NCBI GenBank assembly: GCA_964199315.1
Contig: OZ116710.1
Span: forward strand, 23,002,001-23,066,000
Direction: 5' to 3'
Origin: Orbicella franksi
Taxonomy: Eukaryota
Length of the DNA: 64,000 bases
The notes beneath the pieces are model-generated. The model was not told the DNA's origin. It made no database searches and saw only the letters and a program-made list of their open reading frames with translations. Positions 54,857 to 63,283 of this stretch are shown here, piece after piece (position 1 is the stretch's first letter; each line of letters begins with the position of its first letter). The translations under genes and the position numbers were made by a program.

Positions 54857-55080
54857 AGTAGTGATATATGCTCTTAGGGGCAGTAGCCAATCAGGAGGCA
54901 GGGATTATACCACGTGACCAAGGTTTTCCCATACATTCTCTTAAATTTTCAAGATCCAAGATGGCGCCTGGGTAGGTAAAACATGGCGCCCGTGACGTCA
55001 CAGCTCTTGCATGCCCAAATAAGGAGATAGACCGGAAGTGAATTTCACAATTGATTTTTATTGATTACAGGAAGTAAAAA
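54857..55080 (+). promoter_or_regulatory. Maverick terminal (TIR) region rich in transcription-factor motifs; PolB polyA signal
   Basis: CCAAT 54877, CACGTG 54911, CAAGATGGCG 54957, ACATGGCG 54981, TGACGTCA 54993, CCAAATAAGG 55015, ACCGGAAGTG 55031; minus-strand AATAAA at 55057-55062. Confidence 0.65.
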
Positions 55081-58000
55081 TTACAATGGTGAGTATCCGT
55101 ACGGAAACGACATGAAAGTGTTCGTGTCTATGACGCGTTTGTCGAAGACGAGTCCGTAGCGTTTAGTCCGTGTGATGACTCTGAGATGTTTGGTGGCTGG
55201 GTTTCTCCAGAAGAAGTTGGGGTTGACGACGTGGATATTGCGTCGTTCATCCTCAAGAGGTTGTGTGAGTTCGTCGAGTAGATTTTGTCTCATGACGTCA
55301 TAGTTGAGTTGCCTGGATCCTCGTACATTGAGTGAGAAGCCTCTGACTTTACAGCAGACTTTGCCTTGGTGGGTTCTGTAACCGTAATTTTTGGGTCCAG
55401 CGGTGGTGAAATCGGTGATGAAATCGCCGTCGTCGAGTTCGTTGGTCATCTCTCCCAGGTAATCTCCTAACGGAACATCGGCTTGGCCTGGTTTGTGCGA
55501 GTAGACGACGGAGTCAGTGTCAAAGTAGAGAACTTGTTGTTTTAACTGTTCTAGGTAGCTGTATAATTTGAGACGTGCCCAGCAGGTGGTGAAAGCGGCG
55601 ACGAAGATGTTGATTCGTCCGTTATCGGGTTGATTGTTTTTGAGTTCGGTGTGGACGACTTCTAGGGCTTCGTCGTTGGCGATTCTGACTTGTCGTATGT
55701 CATTGAAGGGATTGGAAACGAGGTCAAAGAGTTGCGTGGCGTTGTAGACGACTTGGGTGGTGGGTTTGTGTAGGTTTTCACCGAACTTGCCCCAGAAGGA
55801 GTTGAGCATGAGTTTGGCGGTGGCTTTGCGTCCTGGATTTTTCTGGATCATGGTTGGATCTAGAGCGATGCCTTCTTTCTGTTGGTATTGTTGCACGTAC
55901 CGTGCCTTGTCTTCGTGGGTGTTACACCAGTTGGGGTAGCCAGCGGATTCCTGTTTGATTTTTAGCCAGGTATTCACATAATCGGCGAAGAGGCCTTTAC
56001 GGCATTGTTCTGGCGGGAAATGGTGGACTTCGTGTATTTTGTTGAGCGTGTATCCCGTGGCAACGGCTTTCTGGATTTCTGGTGTGCACCAGGTCCCTCG
56101 TAGCGTGCGTTGCTCGGGCGTGTGAGGGCAGTGATGCGATTTCTCTAGGAGGGGTTTGGTCATTTCGTGTTCCACGCACGAGCGGCAGAGGGGGAAGGTG
56201 AGTTTACCTCCGTGCCTGAAAGGTAGAACGGGATGGTATAGTTCGTGAGGCGGTAGTATGTCCACTTTGGCCATTCCGAAGTAGTGATGGATGTCTTGAT
56301 CTTGGGGGTTGACGATGACTTGCTGGTGTCCTACAGGGTATTCGCCTTCCTTGTTGGCCCAGGGGTAGAGCGACGTCACGTCGACGTACTTGGTTTTTTC
56401 TCCTTGGGCCATGTCGGTCACGTGATGCAGTTTGACTGCGTTCGTACGGCCTCCGAAGAAGGCTTCTCTGGGCTCGAGCGGTTCGACGATTTGGAACGTG
56501 TCTAGGAACTTGCGGAGATCTGGGTCGGTTTTGACCTCCAGGTCCCAGTCGCATTCCCACTTGACGCAGAGCTGGTAGCCTTGGCGACTGAGAAGGTCGT
56601 GTTTCTTGAGCGTGGACTCGTAGACTTCCTGTAGGGTGCGATCGGTGTGACAGATGGGATATCGGTCTCGTTTTTGGGGGAAACAGCGAGGACATCCGTG
56701 CCATAGACATCCGTGGAATTCATAGACGGTTCGAGTGTCTGGATCGTATCCGTCCATGAGTTGATTGGCTAGACGGATTTCACCTCCGTTTCTCACGGTG
56801 CGTATACGATCGCCTTGGTCAGTGTGTTGTAACAAGTGTTCTTGCCAGGCTAGCCATTTCAGGGCTTTGACGGACTGATTGGATCGTGCGCCGTGCCATC
56901 CTTGAGGTGGTCTGGAGGCGATGGTGTTGGGTGGTACGAGTTTCTTGCGCCAGAATCACTTGCAGGCGGAGGCGATGGTGACGCATTTCTCCATGGGGGT
57001 CAAAGTCGGCTTTTTGTTTGAATTCTTGCCGGAACTTTTGGCAGCCCGCTTTGAGGAGTTTGACGTCAGACTCGCAGGAAGCTTCCATTTCTTGTCTTAG
57101 TACGAAATGGTAGTTGTCGTTGACTTTCTCTTGGTACCACTGTTCGAATTCGGCTTTCTTTTTGGCAGACATGCCATTGGGATCGTACATGTCTCTCGGC
57201 GGCATGGGTCCTTCGTACTCTTGGTTTTCTAGGGTGTTGAATTTGTGAGGGAAGAATCCCTTGCAGAGTTCGTGGATTCCGAAGGTGGCTGGAAAGTTGG
57301 CCAGCGGGAACGGGAGAAAGCATAGGGAATCTTTGAAAGTCAGTCTGTCAGATCTCAGGGACAGTATCTTGGTGCCTACGGTGATTTGGTCTGTGACTTC
57401 TCGATGCGTGGCGTAACAGTGTTGTAAGATGAACATCCCGTCGTAGCCTTTGAGATTGTGAAAGAGGACGATGACGTCCCGATCGTCTCCGTCCACATCG
57501 ACGGCGAGGGATTCGAGGTGGTCGAACATGTCGGAGGTGCAGTTGGGACCGTAGAAGGAGCAGAATTGATCCTCTTCATCGTCTTCTAGGCAGAGTAGAA
57601 TGGGTGTCTGATTCCCTTCGGCGTCGGTGATGGCTTCGTAGTCGCAGTATACTTGAAGGGGCGGATCTCTGACCACCCAGATGCGCGTGTCTGGATCATC
57701 GGGTTCGGGTTCTTCGAAGGGTCGACCTTTGACTTCGTCGCGTGACACGTGTTTCTTTTTGGGCTCGTCTTCGTCTTCGGGGATGCGTTGGATGTAACAT
57801 CGGTGCGTCTTCAGAAAGACTTTCTTTTCGCAGATGTGGCATTCGCCCCATCTGCATACGTGATCGGGGGTACGACGGTCACCTCCTCGTCCAGTCCTGT
57901 GTTTAGGTTCGTAGACGTGGCAACAGTCTGGGCATTTTTTGTAAGTGTCGCAGATGGATGGAATGTTGAGGCTCCGGCGTTGCAGGTGGTAGTTGTAGCA

Positions 58001-59143
58001 TTGGTCTCCGAAGAATTTTCTGTGACATAATCGGCAGATCGAGGCGGGTTCGGGAAACTTGCCTCGTGCTAGGGGTCGTTTGGCCTTGATGAAATCGGGG
58101 CAGTCCTTTCGTTTGCAAGCAGGACACCATTTACCGTTGCAGGTATGACTTTTAAAGTCGTCGTGATCGTACCCTCGATTGCATTCGTCGCAGAAGTAGG
58201 ATTTGTTGAGGAACCCACTGAACGAGTTGCATCCGTTGTAGTGACTGTCTTCTTTGATGAGGCGAATGATCTTGTCCGAGGGTTCGGGTCCCGCGTAGAT
58301 GAGCATGTGGGGTGGATCGATGGAAAGGACTTTGAGTTGGTACCCAGGTAACGCGGCCTGAAACTGCTGCAGTTCTGGAATGCCACAAGGTCCTTCGGGG
58401 ACGTGGGCTAGACGGTGGAGTTCTTTGGCCAATCGCTCTTGGATGGGTAGCCCCTGTTTGAGGTTGTGGTAATCTGGGTCTCGCGAATTTCCGTTCGCGT
58501 CTACCAGGGCTTTCATGGTGACGATGGCGCGAGCGCAGCAGAGATTGTCTTTGTTTTTGATGGTCACGCGCGACCGTTTGACGATTCCCCGCACGGCGGC
58601 ACAACTCGGTTTGTATCGTTTTCCGTGACCACGCCCTGGACCTGGGGTGTGTATGAAAGTGGTTTCCATGGTAAATGTGTCGTCGGGGGTGAATTCTTCG
58701 TTGGAGTTGAGTTTGGCCGCGAGAGACTGGAGATAAGTGTCTAGTCTTTCACTCCCTTCTTCGAATTCGCGCACGGTGAAGGTGGTGGATTGAAAGGCGT
58801 GCGTGAAGGCACTGGACTGCATGGTGAAATGGACCGTGGAGTTGGGTGTCAGGGTAGGATCCTGAGCGATTTGTTGCTCGATGGATCGTTGAAGGGCCTG
58901 AGTCAATTCTTGGCCTAGATTGTCCCTGGGAGTCACGTCTCTGTGTTGTCTGAGCGTGGCTTCGAATCGTTGTTTGTTGAGGACATTTCTCCAGTTACGT
59001 CGAGCGCCTACGGGTCTTAATTCAAATTCTAGGAGGGGTCTTGTACCACCACCTCCGGTTTGGATCATCACTCGGTCGAGAGCCGGATCAAAGATCCAGT
59101 CGTCATCGTCGTCGAAGAAGGCTTCGTCGTGGGTCCGTCTGTT
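55081..59143 (-). pseudogene. polB: Protein-primed family B DNA polymerase (pPolB) with N-terminal terminal-protein/Cys-rich region; +1 frameshift and one nonsense codon
   Basis: Exo motifs YCDYE, HNLKGYD and SCESD; pol motifs YVDVTSLYP, KLMLNSFWGKFG, YFDTDS and GPKNY; VSR-like insert YEFHGCLWHGCPRC. Extra C in the run at 56995-56999 and TGA at 56956-56958 split ORFs 56819-59179 and 55081-56835. Main exon predicted to start at the acceptor at 59143. Confidence 0.93.
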
Positions 59144-59185
59144 CTGTGAAGACATGAATGAGACAAATGTTACGAACATCGCTTT

Positions 59186-59542
59186 TTAATCATCTGAGAA
59201 CGCATACGCTCTTTTGTCATTTACATCACGGAGTGCGTCTTTGAAATTATATCCTAAAAAGACTTTCTTTTCGCTGTTATAAATGTCTACATAATGACCG
59301 TGGATGGTCATGTGATCAGGCTTGAATCGCCCGTAGATCTCATTACAAGCGTCGAAATCGCATTTTTTGGTTCTTAATTCTATGTGACCGTACCCCCATC
59401 GTATTTTCAACATATCGTAATGTACAATTTCTTCGTGAAGTTTGTTCAATAGTTCATTGTTCCTGCGGTCGAATATGTGTTGCCAGGTTGCCAGGCAAAG
59501 TATGTGACACTTTAGTTCTTCTGGTAGGCTATCCCAGTGACT
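59186..59542 (-). CDS. F-box-like paralog C (spliced exon; 137 aa with leader)
   Basis: ttctcactctcttacAG acceptor, then SHWDSLPEELKCHILCL...LKIRWGYGHI...HMTIHGHYVD...FLGY. The frame is open and has no in-frame ATG upstream of the motif. Confidence 0.7.
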   Translation of the reverse strand, partial: SHWDSLPEELKCHILCLATWQHIFDRRNNELLNKLHEEIVHYDMLKIRWGYGHIELRTKKCDFDACNEIYGRFKPDHMTIHGHYVDIYNSEKKVFLGYNFKDALRDVNDKRAYAFSDD

Positions 59543-59957
59543 CTGTAAGAGAGTGAGAACGCTTTCTTGACCACCTATTATTGGCGTACTTGGTGGAGAG
59601 ATCAGGGTAGAGGAAGGTCTTTTCTATGGGGACGCGTTTCTTGGCCTCTTTTATAGTGCAAGATAAATACGTTTTTTGGGGTTTATCGTGAATGTCGATG
59701 TAACATCCGTATATTCTTATATGTGGAAATCTGTCTATTCTCTTCTTTTTTATACAACATGGTGAATTACATCGACATTGAACAATCTTAATGTGTCCTA
59801 TGCCCCATTGTTCTTTCAGTTTGCCGTATTCTATTATTTCCTTGAGAAGACGTCGTAACTTTTTGTTTCTTCTGCGCTCGAGTAGGATTTGATTCCTGGC
59901 TAGACGCATTATGTAGTCCTGTAGTTCATGAGGTAATCGATCCCAGTAATTGCTATT
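59529..59957 (-). CDS. F-box-like paralog B (spliced exon; 161 aa with leader)
   Basis: tatcctcaccccccacAG acceptor, then NSNYWDRLPHELQDYIMRL...LKEQWGIGHI...HIRIYGCYID...YLSC. The frame is open. Confidence 0.7.
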   Translation of the reverse strand, partial: NSNYWDRLPHELQDYIMRLARNQILLERRRNKKLRRLLKEIIEYGKLKEQWGIGHIKIVQCRCNSPCCIKKKRIDRFPHIRIYGCYIDIHDKPQKTYLSCTIKEAKKRVPIEKTFLYPDLSTKYANNRWSRKRSHSLTESLG

Positions 59958-60314
59958 CTGTGGGGGGTGAGGATATCAATCTCTTAACGTCCGGTATTCT
60001 GAGACAAGCATGATTTAACCCGTACCCTAAAAATATGGCTCGCTTAAAGTTGCATTCGTCTGTGTAGAATTCACGACCATGTGCTTGTTTTTCATTCCTG
60101 GAACTCTTCCTTTGGGACAATAATCTAGCAGACATGTCTCTAGAACTACTTTGATTGCACCTAGCCCCCATTCTGCTTTGACCTTAGCGAAGGCTCGAAT
60201 CTCGTTACAAAGCTCTCTCCTCATTTCACGTTCGCGCCTCTCGACGAGAGACTGGGACTCTCTGAGGTGAAGGATGTAGGCCTGCATCTCAGGGGGAAGA
60301 CAATCCCAGTAACT
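59953..60314 (-). pseudogene. F-box-like paralog A (spliced exon, frameshifted near 60070)
   Basis: ctttttggcacgcctttgttcacAG acceptor with CTGAC branch site; SYWDCLPPEMQAYILHL...VKAEWGLGAI...KHMVV/(shift)/FYTD...FLGY. 362 nt is not a multiple of 3. Confidence 0.68.
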
Positions 60315-60345
60315 CTGTGAACAAAGGCGTGCCAAAAAGATGTCG

Positions 60346-60615
60346 TCAGTTGTCTAGGGAAGCCACGACCGTACTTAGATAGCACGGTGTGTGACAGATC
60401 TGACAGTGCAACTTCTCGTTGTTCACCCCCTTGTTGATCTGATCATCGAGTGCATCGACGAAGCAATCGAAATGCACGTGGTAACGGCAGCACTTGGTAC
60501 GACCGCAGGTTTCGGTTCTAAGGATGACTTTCTTACATAGGGTGCACGTTATACTCACTGCTTCATGTTGATCCATCAGTTGGTTCATCTCCTCGTCGGT
60601 CGGCTCCTCTGCCAT
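60346..60615 (-). CDS. Small RING-finger-like protein (89 aa); first 19 codons double as the shared leader exon
   Basis: ATCATGG start; CTLC..CC.YHVH..C..CQIC pattern; GCA|GTGAGT donor after codon 19 (60559/60558). Confidence 0.7.
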   Translation of the reverse strand: MAEEPTDEEMNQLMDQHEAVSITCTLCKKVILRTETCGRTKCCRYHVHFDCFVDALDDQINKGVNNEKLHCQICHTPCYLSTVVASLDN

Positions 60616-60639
60616 GATTTTAAGCACTCGATACAAGTC

Positions 60640-60870
60640 AAAAACTCAGAGTGCCGTGAACAGTTCGAGCCGATCTTTTTATACTTACGGTAAAAACTGG
60701 ATCCCAGGTTGCACTCGACCTGGACCCAGTCTCCGACCGTGAGGTGGGCGTGGTAGGGGGATACCCTCTATCCCCTGGGTCTACCCTGCACACGTGATGT
60801 CGGCCTTTTTCGTTTGATTGGTGCATGATTGACATAAAGCGAGGCAAACGCATTTGGCATTTTTTCAGTT
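60640..60870. promoter_or_regulatory. Divergent promoter between the two accessory transcription units
   Basis: Minus-strand TATAAAA at 60677-60683; GGGCGTGG about 60746; CACGTG 60791; ATTGG about 60817; CATAAA about 60833; ttttttcAG acceptor at 60868 before the plus-strand ATG. Confidence 0.55.
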
Positions 60871-60876
60871 TTGGTG

Positions 60877-61704
60877 ATGGAGACTGAATCTTGACGCCGC
60901 AGCCGCCGACCTCGAAGTCAGTCCCCTGAAGAATCACCGAGACGAGTACGTCATCGTCGTCGTGCACGATCACACGATGACGATGAACCACCGAGACGTA
61001 GTCGTCGCCTTCAGGGTCATATACCCGAAGAAACACCGATTCAACAAGTGTGTTTTATTTGTCAGAGAGATATTCACGTCGATTCTCTGGCATCGTGCCA
61101 GCGTACTCCTTGCTGCGGTGTGTGGATGCATCGACGTTGTTACCGGGATATGGAGAGATGGGTTCTGAACTGCGGCAACTGCCGACGCGTGATCGGCGAC
61201 AATCAGCCTGAGGTCGTGTTGGAAACCGACGAGGAACTCGAGGAAGATGATCATGAGGAGCACCAGTTAACGGCAGGTGCGAATGATCGTTTAGTTAGAA
61301 TGGATCAAGAGATTGAGCGATATCGTAGTGAGGGTAGACCTAACCACTGCCATTGCGAGGGGTCGTACTTGTGGAATAATTTGCCGTATGACTTGGACTC
61401 TGGCGTTTGGCTACGTTATTATACCTTTCTCAGAAATTTCGTGACTCTGTATCGGGATCGAGACCTGTACATTCACGGTAGTGTGCGTCTCCCCGTGGAA
61501 CCGACCCGAGAGGTCAGAGCTATTTTGTACCGTCTGTTCATTAACAATACCCCTTATTATACGTATAACTTGATCCGAATTCAAAGGTTCAGACTCTTCT
61601 TTAGACGTGTGGAAAGACAAAGGGATATTGAGATTCGACAACTGTGTCTACTACCTTTTCCTGGGGGTCCCTCGCTTTACCAGGAGGACGGACTATGGAC
61701 CTGA
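60877..61704 (+). pseudogene. Arg/Ser-rich N-terminus + RING finger + C-terminal domain 1 (275 codons; TGA at codon 6)
   Basis: METES*RRSRRPRSQSP...PPRRSRRLQG...CFIC..PCCGVWMHRRC..CGNC. The frame is continuous with ORF 61048-61704 apart from TGA at 60892-60894. Confidence 0.7.
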
Positions 61705-61725
61705 CACTGTTTTTTTCATTCGCAG

Positions 61726-62162
61726 TGGACACTCATCGCAGAATGATTCATGACACCCTTACCTATATGAGAGACCATGGAAAACCCTTCGACACGCACA
61801 ATTCCTTGATGCGTTCCTGGAATCATTTGTCTTATCCCATTCCTGTCACGGTGTGATTCCAGTACTATCGCGAGATGGAGGACTTTGTGCGATCCTTGGA
61901 GTTTCGAAGTCCCATGTACATTCACGGCACCGTGTTCTTTCCCCTCAATGTCATTTCGTACGATCATATACGCATGGAGGTGTAACGCATGTTTTATTTC
62001 AACACCCCTTTCTTAGTGTTCGAATTCACCTCCAGAATTAGGTTTCAGTTGCTGTTCATATCTTCGTCGACGTTCGGGGACCAAATAAGGTTCGAACGTT
62101 TGTTTGTGACACCGAATGCCTCGAATACTCTGTACCACAACGGCATGACGTGCGAGAGTTGA
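61726..62162 (+). pseudogene. Paralogous C-terminal domain 2 (alternative terminal exon), two nonsense codons
   Basis: CTGAC + ttttttttcattcgcAG acceptor (phase 1). GKP..H..SWNHLSY..V*FQYY..MYIHGTV..V*RMFYFNTPF aligns with domain 1 GRP..H..LWNNLPY..VWLRYY..LYIHGSV..LYRLFINNTPY. AATAAA at 62225-62230. Confidence 0.65.
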
Positions 62163-62232
62163 AGAAAAAACAAAGAGACTCTTTTTGAAAAACAACAAAG
62201 TGTGTAACTTTCTTTAATTACAAGAATAAAGT

Positions 62233-62613
62233 TTACAATTTCCAACGTTTCTTGGTTTGCATGATTTTCTTAACAATGCGTTCTGTCATGGTTTTACGTC
62301 CGGGTAATTTGTCGATGGCTTGGATCATCTTGGTGTCGGCGTTCCATTTGTCCTGTAAGTTCTTGGCCCTGGAATAGTCAATGTCGTGTTGTTTGGCCAG
62401 TCGGTCCAGACGGTTGATCCCGGGGTCTTCTTGCGCCAGACGTTTCTTCAGTTTGGTACCAGGTCCCATGTACTGATAACCGGGCCAATGAAACTCGATC
62501 CCAGTCTTGCCCAACCATTTTTGGATGTCGAACCCATACCCTCGTTGACATCAGCGACGTCGGGTACTTCTCCTCAGGGGTGGAGCCCTTTTCTTCTTCT
62601 TACTGCATGTCAT
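62233..62613 (-). pseudogene. Basic N-terminus + parvovirus VP1u-like phospholipase A2 domain protein (126 codons; TGA at codon 21)
   Basis: MTCSKKKKRAPPLRRSTRRR*CQRGYGF..PGYQYMGPGT..GINRLDRLAKQHDIDY (YxGPG Ca-loop and HDxxY catalytic motif). TGA at 62551-62553; ATTAAA at 62213-62218 on the minus strand. Confidence 0.82.
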
Positions 62614-63283
62614 AGCCTAGTTTTCGTCTTGGAGGAGCGTCCCAATTTTCCCAACCTGCTTGTAACTGTTCGAATGTGGTAGGCTTGGCCTTCTTGTACT
62701 TCTTTGCCTTGCCTTTAGGAATGTAACGTCCTTCGTCGTCTTCTAAGAGTGATTTCAGGAAACCTTTGGCTGCTTTGCCTACGCCTGATTTCTTCTTCAA
62801 TCCTTCTTTTTTGCTCACTACTTTTTTACCAGTGGATGATATGGGAGTTTTGCCCAACGTGACTGGTTCAAATGAACTGAAGGGTTTGGGGGTTTTCTTC
62901 TCCCTTTTAACACTCGGTGTAGCGGTTTCTTGTTTGATGACGATTGGGGGTGCTTGTTCTTTTACGACTCCCTTGAGGATCTGTTTCAACAGACTTTCGA
63001 CGGGTGCGTCGACCATGCCTTCGGGTTCCGTCGTTCCCTGGTACGAGATGGGACCGCTTTTACCCGTCCGTATGCATTTCACCAGTTTACCTTCCTCGGT
63101 GGCGATGGATTTGGTCATCTTGACGGCCATGCTGTCGGGGATACGTTTGTCGTTCAAGATGAGATGTTCTTCGGCGGCCAGACATCCGGTTTTGTTCAAC
63201 AAGGCGCTCTGGGTGATCTTACCCTTGTAATAATCTTGCAGACGATTGAATTCTTGAACGGGTACCATCATGACTTCGTTCAT
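62600..63283 (-). CDS. Maverick hypothetical protein (227 aa; helical N-terminus, Lys-rich low-complexity C-terminus)
   Basis: Intact ATG ORF overlapping its neighbours (ATGA overlap at 63280-63283; 14-nt overlap with the PLA2 ORF start). Confidence 0.7.
   Translation of the reverse strand: MNEVMMVPVQEFNRLQDYYKGKITQSALLNKTGCLAAEEHLILNDKRIPDSMAVKMTKSIATEEGKLVKCIRTGKSGPISYQGTTEPEGMVDAPVESLLKQILKGVVKEQAPPIVIKQETATPSVKREKKTPKPFSSFEPVTLGKTPISSTGKKVVSKKEGLKKKSGVGKAAKGFLKSLLEDDEGRYIPKGKAKKYKKAKPTTFEQLQAGWENWDAPPRRKLGYDMQ

Follow-up and report, generated by a model that had tools for sequence, protein, structure and literature searches.

The RING Gene and Its Element

The stretch of DNA analysed here, referred to below as the window, comprises 64,000 nucleotides of the Orbicella franksi genome (G000:C13:23002001-23066000, part of a 497-Mb eukaryotic assembly). 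Towards its end lies an adintovirus-type Maverick/Polinton element of some 20 kb. The subject of this report is one gene of that element (60877–62162, plus strand), situated directly upstream of the DNA polymerase gene (PolB) and divergent from a second RING unit, in which one exon for a RING-like zinc finger is followed by two related C-terminal domains, called here domain 1 and domain 2.

All features of the gene described in this section lie on the plus strand. Exon 1 (60877–61276) begins with ATG 60877, the true start, which is found in 30/30 copies, and encodes an Arg/Ser-rich N-terminus, the RING-like finger (61051–61182; CxxC-x11-C-x4-CC-x4-H-xx-C-x10-CxxC), and an acidic linker (61213–61251) containing the invariant VLETDEE. 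It ends in phase 1, at position 61276, within the 5' splice site CAG/GTGCGA (61274–61282). The predicted intron (61277–61725, 449 nt) contains domain 1 (61277–61704, stop codon 61702–61704), which would be coding in an intron-retaining mRNA. The 3' end of the intron (61701–61725) is made up of a CTGAC at 61701–61705 lying over the domain 1 stop, a pyrimidine tract, and the AG at 61724–61725. Exon 2 (61726–62162) starts in phase 1, encodes domain 2, a paralogue of domain 1, and terminates with the stop codon 62160–62162. A TATA-like CATAAAG (60833–60839) stands about 40 nt 5' of the start codon, in the 240-nt spacer common to this gene and the divergent minus-strand RING unit, and an AATAAA polyadenylation signal is located at 62225–62230; both are retained in nearly all of 30 aligned copies. 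We infer that CATAAAG acts as a promoter element, and AATAAA presumably serves both mRNAs. The conservation of the two signals suggests a single transcription unit.

The genome has at least 40 copies of the region 60868–62230 at 79%–96% identity. The base alignment consisted of the window and 29 genome copies (n = 30), to which 16 more divergent genome copies (73%–86% identity) and 39 JGI metagenome contigs, the most distant of which have a domain 2 only about 40% identical at the protein level, were added, giving around 85 copies overall. The acceptor, branch site, and tract were counted in 76 copies and the donor in 46 genome copies.

The window copy itself is decayed, as three in-frame stops interrupt its RING gene (60892–60894, 61854–61856, and 61983–61985) and its PolB gene is split. 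For the latter two stops, an earlier reading of the window made from the sequence alone had anticipated TGG or TAY codons in intact copies, and sense codons of the predicted kinds occupy both positions in 29/29 other copies. The stop at 60892–60894, which lay outside that reading, falls six codons past ATG 60877, and because of it the N-terminus of exon 1 is missing from the list of open reading frames (ORFs). PolB, of the protein-primed type, occupies two overlapping ORFs on the minus strand (55081–56835 and 56819–59179), an arrangement consistent with a frameshift.

Conservation of the Splice Signals

None of the 46 genome copies has lost the GT of the donor (61276/61277), and divergent JGI contigs have it as well, down to about 60% protein identity. 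When the 28 phase-compatible GT sites of the upstream ORF were ranked by a rough donor matrix, 61276 was the top scorer, and it is the sole positively scoring site never lost in any of the 46 copies. The match to the donor consensus is good from −3 to +3 and poor from +4 to +6, and therefore fits partial use of the site. The Gly encoded at the donor is nearly invariant in 24 aligned sequences, and the residue after it is Ala, Thr, Ser, Asp, or Ile; the common codons of these residues begin with a purine, which agrees with the requirement for GTR at the donor.

The acceptor YAG is retained in 76/76 copies, as CAG in 64 and as TAG in 12, and every one of them also has a branch-like CTRAC overlapping the domain 1 stop, 18–31 nt from the 3' splice site. 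One copy has CTAAC together with a TAA stop, so that the branch-like consensus and the stop are both retained. The tract from the stop to the acceptor is 84% pyrimidine and takes 12 length values, which cover all three residues modulo 3; such variable spacing rules out conserved read-through or frameshifting as well as an upstream ATG at a set distance. Exon 2 opens with TG in 67 copies and with TT in nine. This variation is synonymous (GTG and GTT, both Val) only if the codon spans the junction, and is therefore the pattern expected of splicing. In sequence the region resembles a spliceosomal GT-AG intron, with conserved GT and AG ends, a branch consensus 18–31 nt upstream of the 3' splice site, and a pyrimidine tract. 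Judged from the alignment, the signals exceed chance expectation. The sequence-only reading had placed a phase-1 donor CAG/GTGCGA at 61276/61277, an acceptor at 61725/61726, and an overlap of CTGAC with the stop codon, and all three lie where it put them.

Reading Frames, Selection, and the Start of Domain 2

Of the 30 aligned copies, 27 have an uninterrupted exon 1, and in 29 the exon 1 indels have lengths divisible by three. Domain 1 continues the frame of exon 1 and is open in 26, and the frame of domain 2 (61728–62162) in 28; the latter is also open in 50 of the 51 full-length genome matches of the domain 2 profile. The ratio of nonsynonymous to synonymous substitution rates (dN/dS) in the annotated frame of the same 30 copies is 0.45 for exon 1, 0.29 for domain 1, and 0.42 for domain 2, while wrong frames give 0.8–2.0 (0.8–1.4 in the case of domain 2). 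Between lineages (median over pairs with dS > 0.4), the values are 0.48 for domain 1 and 0.37 for domain 2. The low ratios in frame, compared with the wrong frames, argue that both paralogues are maintained, and by this measure both domains are under purifying selection.

In a profile–profile comparison, 118 of about 142 columns align between the two domains (98.2% probability, E 4e-14, 30% identity), and the similarity starts at the splice junction. This bears out the earlier observation that the downstream exon aligns with domain 1 from the equivalent position. Both paralogues are retained down to about 40% identity.

Domain 2 has no conserved start codon. For the sequence-only reading, splicing would be refuted if intact copies translated domain 2 from its own ATG, such as 61695, and did not conserve the donor; the copies do not bear this out. 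ATG 61695 owes its existence to a Trp codon close to the domain 1 stop and shares the frame of domain 2 in only 8/30 copies, approximately the chance expectation, and the donor is invariant. No in-frame ATG is present between the upstream stop and the acceptor in 40/76 copies, and at least nine of these 40 also lack a Met in the first 28 residues of exon 2, a segment that includes the strongly conserved motif R-D-x-G-x-P-F-E-T-H-N-S-L-T-R-S-W. As far as the compared copies tell, domain 2 has no start of its own. The comparison of copies thus shows the structure of the gene, selection on its three coding parts, and the absence of a separate start for domain 2.

Homologues of the read-through protein are solely unnamed proteins from JGI, ENA, and Logan assemblies (41%–91% identity). 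A profile search of 1.84 billion representatives matched 240 clusters, and the 154 domain-bearing members that were retrieved and classified comprise 89 domain-1-like and 65 domain-2-like sequences. The RING and a domain-1-type domain occur in one ORF in 26/154 members; the combination of the RING with a domain-2-type domain in one ORF was found in 0/154. The stand-alone domain-2-type ORFs called on public contigs (133–180 aa) have heterogeneous, often Phe/Leu-rich N-termini, as expected where a chance ATG opens translation of a T tract. A search of IMG/VR gave no relative of domain 2.

A Contig That Carries the Junction

The junction itself is represented by one sequence, JGI contig Ga0099803_1253978 (L079, 2525 nt), which corresponds to window positions 60347–61276 followed directly by 61722–61990. 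The donor side and the acceptor side have a GCAG in common, which is the 4-nt overlap at the join. From the acidic linker the reading frame continues unbroken over the join, by way of Val, and enters domain 2. L079 is only 90%–95% identical to any copy in the genome. It could stem from RNA, such as a long plus-strand transcript of a copy already in decay, or be a DNA copy that underwent precise intron loss, and either origin would point to use of the 61276>61726 junction.

Proposed Expression of the Gene

The above data are best accommodated by one gene (60877–62162), the shared RING exon of which would either be read into domain 1 or be spliced from 61276 to 61726 onto domain 2. We put the probability of this reading at about 0.78. 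One pre-mRNA would give rise to two proteins with a common RRSRRL motif, RING-like finger, and acidic VLETDEE linker. Retention of the intron would yield the RING with domain 1, ending at the stop at 61702 (about 275 aa in open-frame copies). Its removal would join G 61276 to TG 61726 in a Val codon and yield the RING with domain 2 (about 278 aa). Domain 2 would be an old tandem duplicate of domain 1, and the old domain 1 stop region would then have been recruited as branch site and 3' splice site. Duplication followed by recruitment is the likely history since another element family of the same genome has a single-domain relative, in which a single ORF encodes the RING, the linker, and one domain. 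The sequence-only proposal that a RING N-terminus is swapped between paralogous C-terminal domains is thereby strengthened, both by the comparison of about 85 copies and by the junction in L079.

Several observations weigh against this reading or against the function it implies. The donor overlaps a Gly codon, so that part of its conservation is due to coding. L079 carries, besides the junction, the intergenic spacer and the opposite-strand unit, and its exon 1 has two nonsense codons. Moreover, no genome copy carries the junction as one piece, as the genome search gave split matches only. Intron loss at the DNA level could explain these features of L079, and a chance deletion at both predicted sites through the GCAG microhomology could in principle produce the join, although we consider the latter very unlikely. 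The finger lacks the canonical fourth RING ligand, a His, and neither a Pfam match at E ≤ 1 on the RING gene nor a match to any curated RING model was obtained. Finally, the C-terminal domain has no known fold, and a substrate-binding role for it is therefore a guess.

Alternatively, domain 2 might be a separate small gene with its own start, ATG 61695 or an internal Met, and no splicing. Gene callers do report it as stand-alone ORFs, and ATG 61695 is in frame in the window copy and seven others. However, this ATG is out of frame in 22/30 copies that otherwise keep domain 2 open, it is owed solely to the Trp codon of domain 1, more than half of the 76 copies offer no upstream in-frame ATG and some of these no Met before the conserved core, and the called ORFs owe their heterogeneous N-termini to translation of a T tract. 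An independent domain 2 gene is accordingly improbable. A splice into domain 2 from a donor other than 61276, such as that of an upstream leader exon, without fusion to the RING, is about as improbable or slightly more so. The acceptor evidence is independent of the choice of donor and would serve this explanation equally well, but 61276 is the sole well-scoring phase-compatible GT in all copies, the junction is exactly where the paralogy with domain 1 sets in, the Val codon spanning the junction varies synonymously only, and L079 carries the 61276>61726 join.

We give very little weight to the idea that domain 2 is an unexpressed duplicate in decay whose splice-like signals arose by coincidence. 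The two in-frame stops in domain 2 of the window copy would suit it, yet nearly all full-length genome copies of domain 2 (50/51) are open, its dN/dS between lineages is low (0.37), and both paralogues have been kept to about 40% identity, in 240 database clusters. Least credible is access to domain 2 by stop read-through or by frameshifting on the T run after the domain 1 stop. UGA followed by C is a leaky stop context, and T runs are possibly slippery; against this, the distance from the stop to domain 2 takes 12 values spread over the three frames, which leaves no one recoding event that could have been conserved.

The RING-Like Finger and Its Flanking Motifs

The finger has eight or nine conserved Cys/His residues, and its ligand positions vary little or not at all across 24 sequences with identities as low as 42%. 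The CC doublet or a neighbouring extra Cys may replace the missing fourth ligand. A profile search against the sequences of solved structures gave weak top matches that are all RINGs, with RING-H2 domains leading, namely Pirh2 (E 0.0023), HRD1 (E 0.0068), gp78, RNF165, and RNF4. The AlphaFold model has a pLDDT of 65.6 overall and 58–70 in the finger, a middling confidence. Foldseek superposes the finger on the RNF165 RING with a TM score of 0.84 and an rmsd of 1.2 Å over 50 residues, and in an exhaustive structural search (VIA) the 39 best rows were all RING or U-box (Z 4.1–5.8). A RING fold of the N-terminal finger is thus supported at the level of models.

An invariant Ile lies between the first two Cys, and an Arg directly after the last Cys; we take these to be the positions of the E2 contact and of the "linchpin" in active RINGs. 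The finger may recruit an E2 enzyme. Within VLETDEE, L-E-T-D-E is invariant in the 24 sequences. The motif could, on our assumption, be SUMO-interaction-like, or LxCxE-like with a casein-kinase-2 site, and we mention both as leads only. A further motif, RRSRRL-x-G-x-x-PEE (within 60877–61050), immediately precedes the RING; like VLETDEE, which immediately follows the finger, it changes little or not at all among relatives with identities as low as 42%.

The C-Terminal Domains

Both C-terminal domains were modelled with confidence. Domain 2 modelled alone reached a pLDDT of 84 and a pTM of 0.80, and domain 1 within the full-length model a pLDDT of 85–91. Neither domain has a Pfam match, and the C-terminal domain found no structural match in Foldseek searches of the PDB (E > 1) or BFVD (E > 0.4); the best VIA Z score, 4.8, is below the noise level of the tool. 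The ESM Atlas gave weak leads to viral RING proteins. The structure prediction suggested by the sequence-only reading therefore delivered confident models that match no known structure. An F-box or PRANC identity was considered for domains 1 and 2, the F-box idea being prompted by W-x-x-L-P, and found no support, as there was neither a Pfam nor a fold match. The weak PRANC match in the region (E 0.022) falls on a module of the opposite unit, which is not homologous to domains 1 and 2.

The label "substrate-binding" was given to the C-terminal domain from its position alone. Two target specificities may result from the two C-terminal domains. Of the earlier view of modular E3 ligases with exchangeable domains, the gene structure is favoured by the sequence comparison and the RING fold by the models, whereas the C-terminal domain belongs to no recognisable fold or family.

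Relation to Known Systems

In the early region of polyomaviruses, large T and small t share an N-terminal exon, one of them being made by read-through of the donor and the other by splicing. The RING gene resembles this arrangement in its shared exon and in the proposed choice between reading through the intron to a stop and splicing to a downstream exon. The two differ in that a RING-like finger stands here in place of the J domain, the alternative C-termini are here mutually paralogous, and the host element is a 20-kb Maverick/adintovirus-like provirus of an invertebrate. Herpesvirus ICP0 is a viral RING E3 from a spliced gene. By analogy, the likeness would extend to a virus-type RING protein, a spliced gene, and a presumed redirecting of host ubiquitination; however, there is no sequence kinship beyond the RING fold, and the ligands of the finger described here are unusual, with a CC doublet and no fourth-position His. 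In the Drosophila genes lola and mod(mdg4), a constant N-terminal domain is spliced to tandem-duplicated, related C-terminal exons. The RING gene shares with them the constant N-terminal part and the alternative, mutually related C-terminal parts. In contrast, lola and mod(mdg4) encode cellular BTB transcription factors and have many variable exons, whereas here there are two alternatives, one of which would be reached by intron retention.

To our knowledge, Mavericks and adintoviruses are widespread in animal genomes, but hardly any work has been done on their non-structural genes. The literature searched gave no account of splicing in these elements. Within adintoviruses, genes termed "Oncoid" have been placed directly upstream of PolB (Starrett et al. 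2021, PMC8502044). The RING gene shares with them this position, paired CxxC motifs, and an adjacent acidic stretch of the casein-kinase-2 type (PMC8502044), here T-D-E-E. Unlike the Oncoid genes, it lacks the defining LxCxE, and the invariant motif is LETDE, without Cys. The Oncoid paper makes no mention of a RING fold, splicing, or duplicated C-terminal domains (PMC8502044).

We tentatively suggest, at odds somewhat below even, that Maverick/adintovirus-like viruses of invertebrates encode splice-programmed modular RING ligases, in which a constant E2-recruiting exon would be combined with alternative target-recognition domains of an unseen fold, derived by tandem exon duplication, and that the two divergent units upstream of PolB may be the cassette with which the element manipulates its host, comparable to the early regions of small DNA tumour viruses. 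Polyoma-, papilloma-, and adenoviruses widen their protein set by means of host splicing. If the proposed expression of the RING gene is correct, its conserved intron-retention switch would mean that host splicing is likewise used to widen the protein set of the element, and the proposed kinship of Mavericks/adintoviruses with the early regions of small DNA tumour viruses would be strengthened. With respect to annotation, public stand-alone domain-2-type ORFs with chance starts are probably mis-modelled exons. The C-terminal domain, confidently modelled and lacking a structural match, is a target for structural and interaction work.

The Opposite-Strand Unit

The divergent unit (59186–60636, minus strand) comprises a RING-like ORF (60346–60636), which has a weak match to PF08746 (E 0.0046), followed by three modules (60027–60335, 59529–59909, and 59186–59449). 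On this strand too, CTGAC overlaps the stop of the RING ORF (60345–60349), as the sequence-only reading had pointed out. Modules 2 and 3 share 33% identity (E 2e-19) and are clear paralogues. Their opening motif recurs in module 1, and YAG/AGTYACTGGGA, at the start of all three, encodes S-x-W-D-x-L-P. Domains 1 and 2 have no homologue among these modules (hhalign probability 0.8%). Pairing the module acceptors, which are in phase 0, with the conserved phase-1 CTAA/GTACG of the RING ORF would lose the frame; a phase-0 TC/GTRGCT is also conserved in this unit.

The opposite cassette is variable, as seen when the window was compared with L007–L030, L055, L058, L079, and L084. About 20/30 genome copies have an extra 95–320 nt between the CTGAC/stop and module 1 (region 60318–60345), and L079 and L084 are entirely devoid of module 3 (region 59193–59556).

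Element Context and Related Elements

From about position 55000 onward, the GC content of the window climbs from about 0.38 to about 0.48. The gene content of the element comprises PolB, an adenain-like protease, an integrase with rve and chromo domains, and a PLA2-like domain (62233–62514; PF08398, E 5e-12), beyond which the protease and the integrase are located. A 390-nt stretch (62254–62643) that includes the PLA2-like domain is missing in many related copies (L055, L058–L060, L065, L077, L080, L082, L084, L086, and L087), which have about 48 nt instead; the domain is thus found in some element lineages only.

The single-domain relative mentioned above belongs to a 6.8-kb element (L050, G000:C1:39194500-39202200) with perfectly identical inverted ends of 1983 nt, each of which carries the RING, the linker, and one domain in one ORF, with the RRSRRL start motif in a different frame from the RING. 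The middle of this element encodes a packaging-ATPase-like ORF and a long Pro-rich repeat. Pairs similar to L050 are present on C5, C7, C10, C11, and C12.

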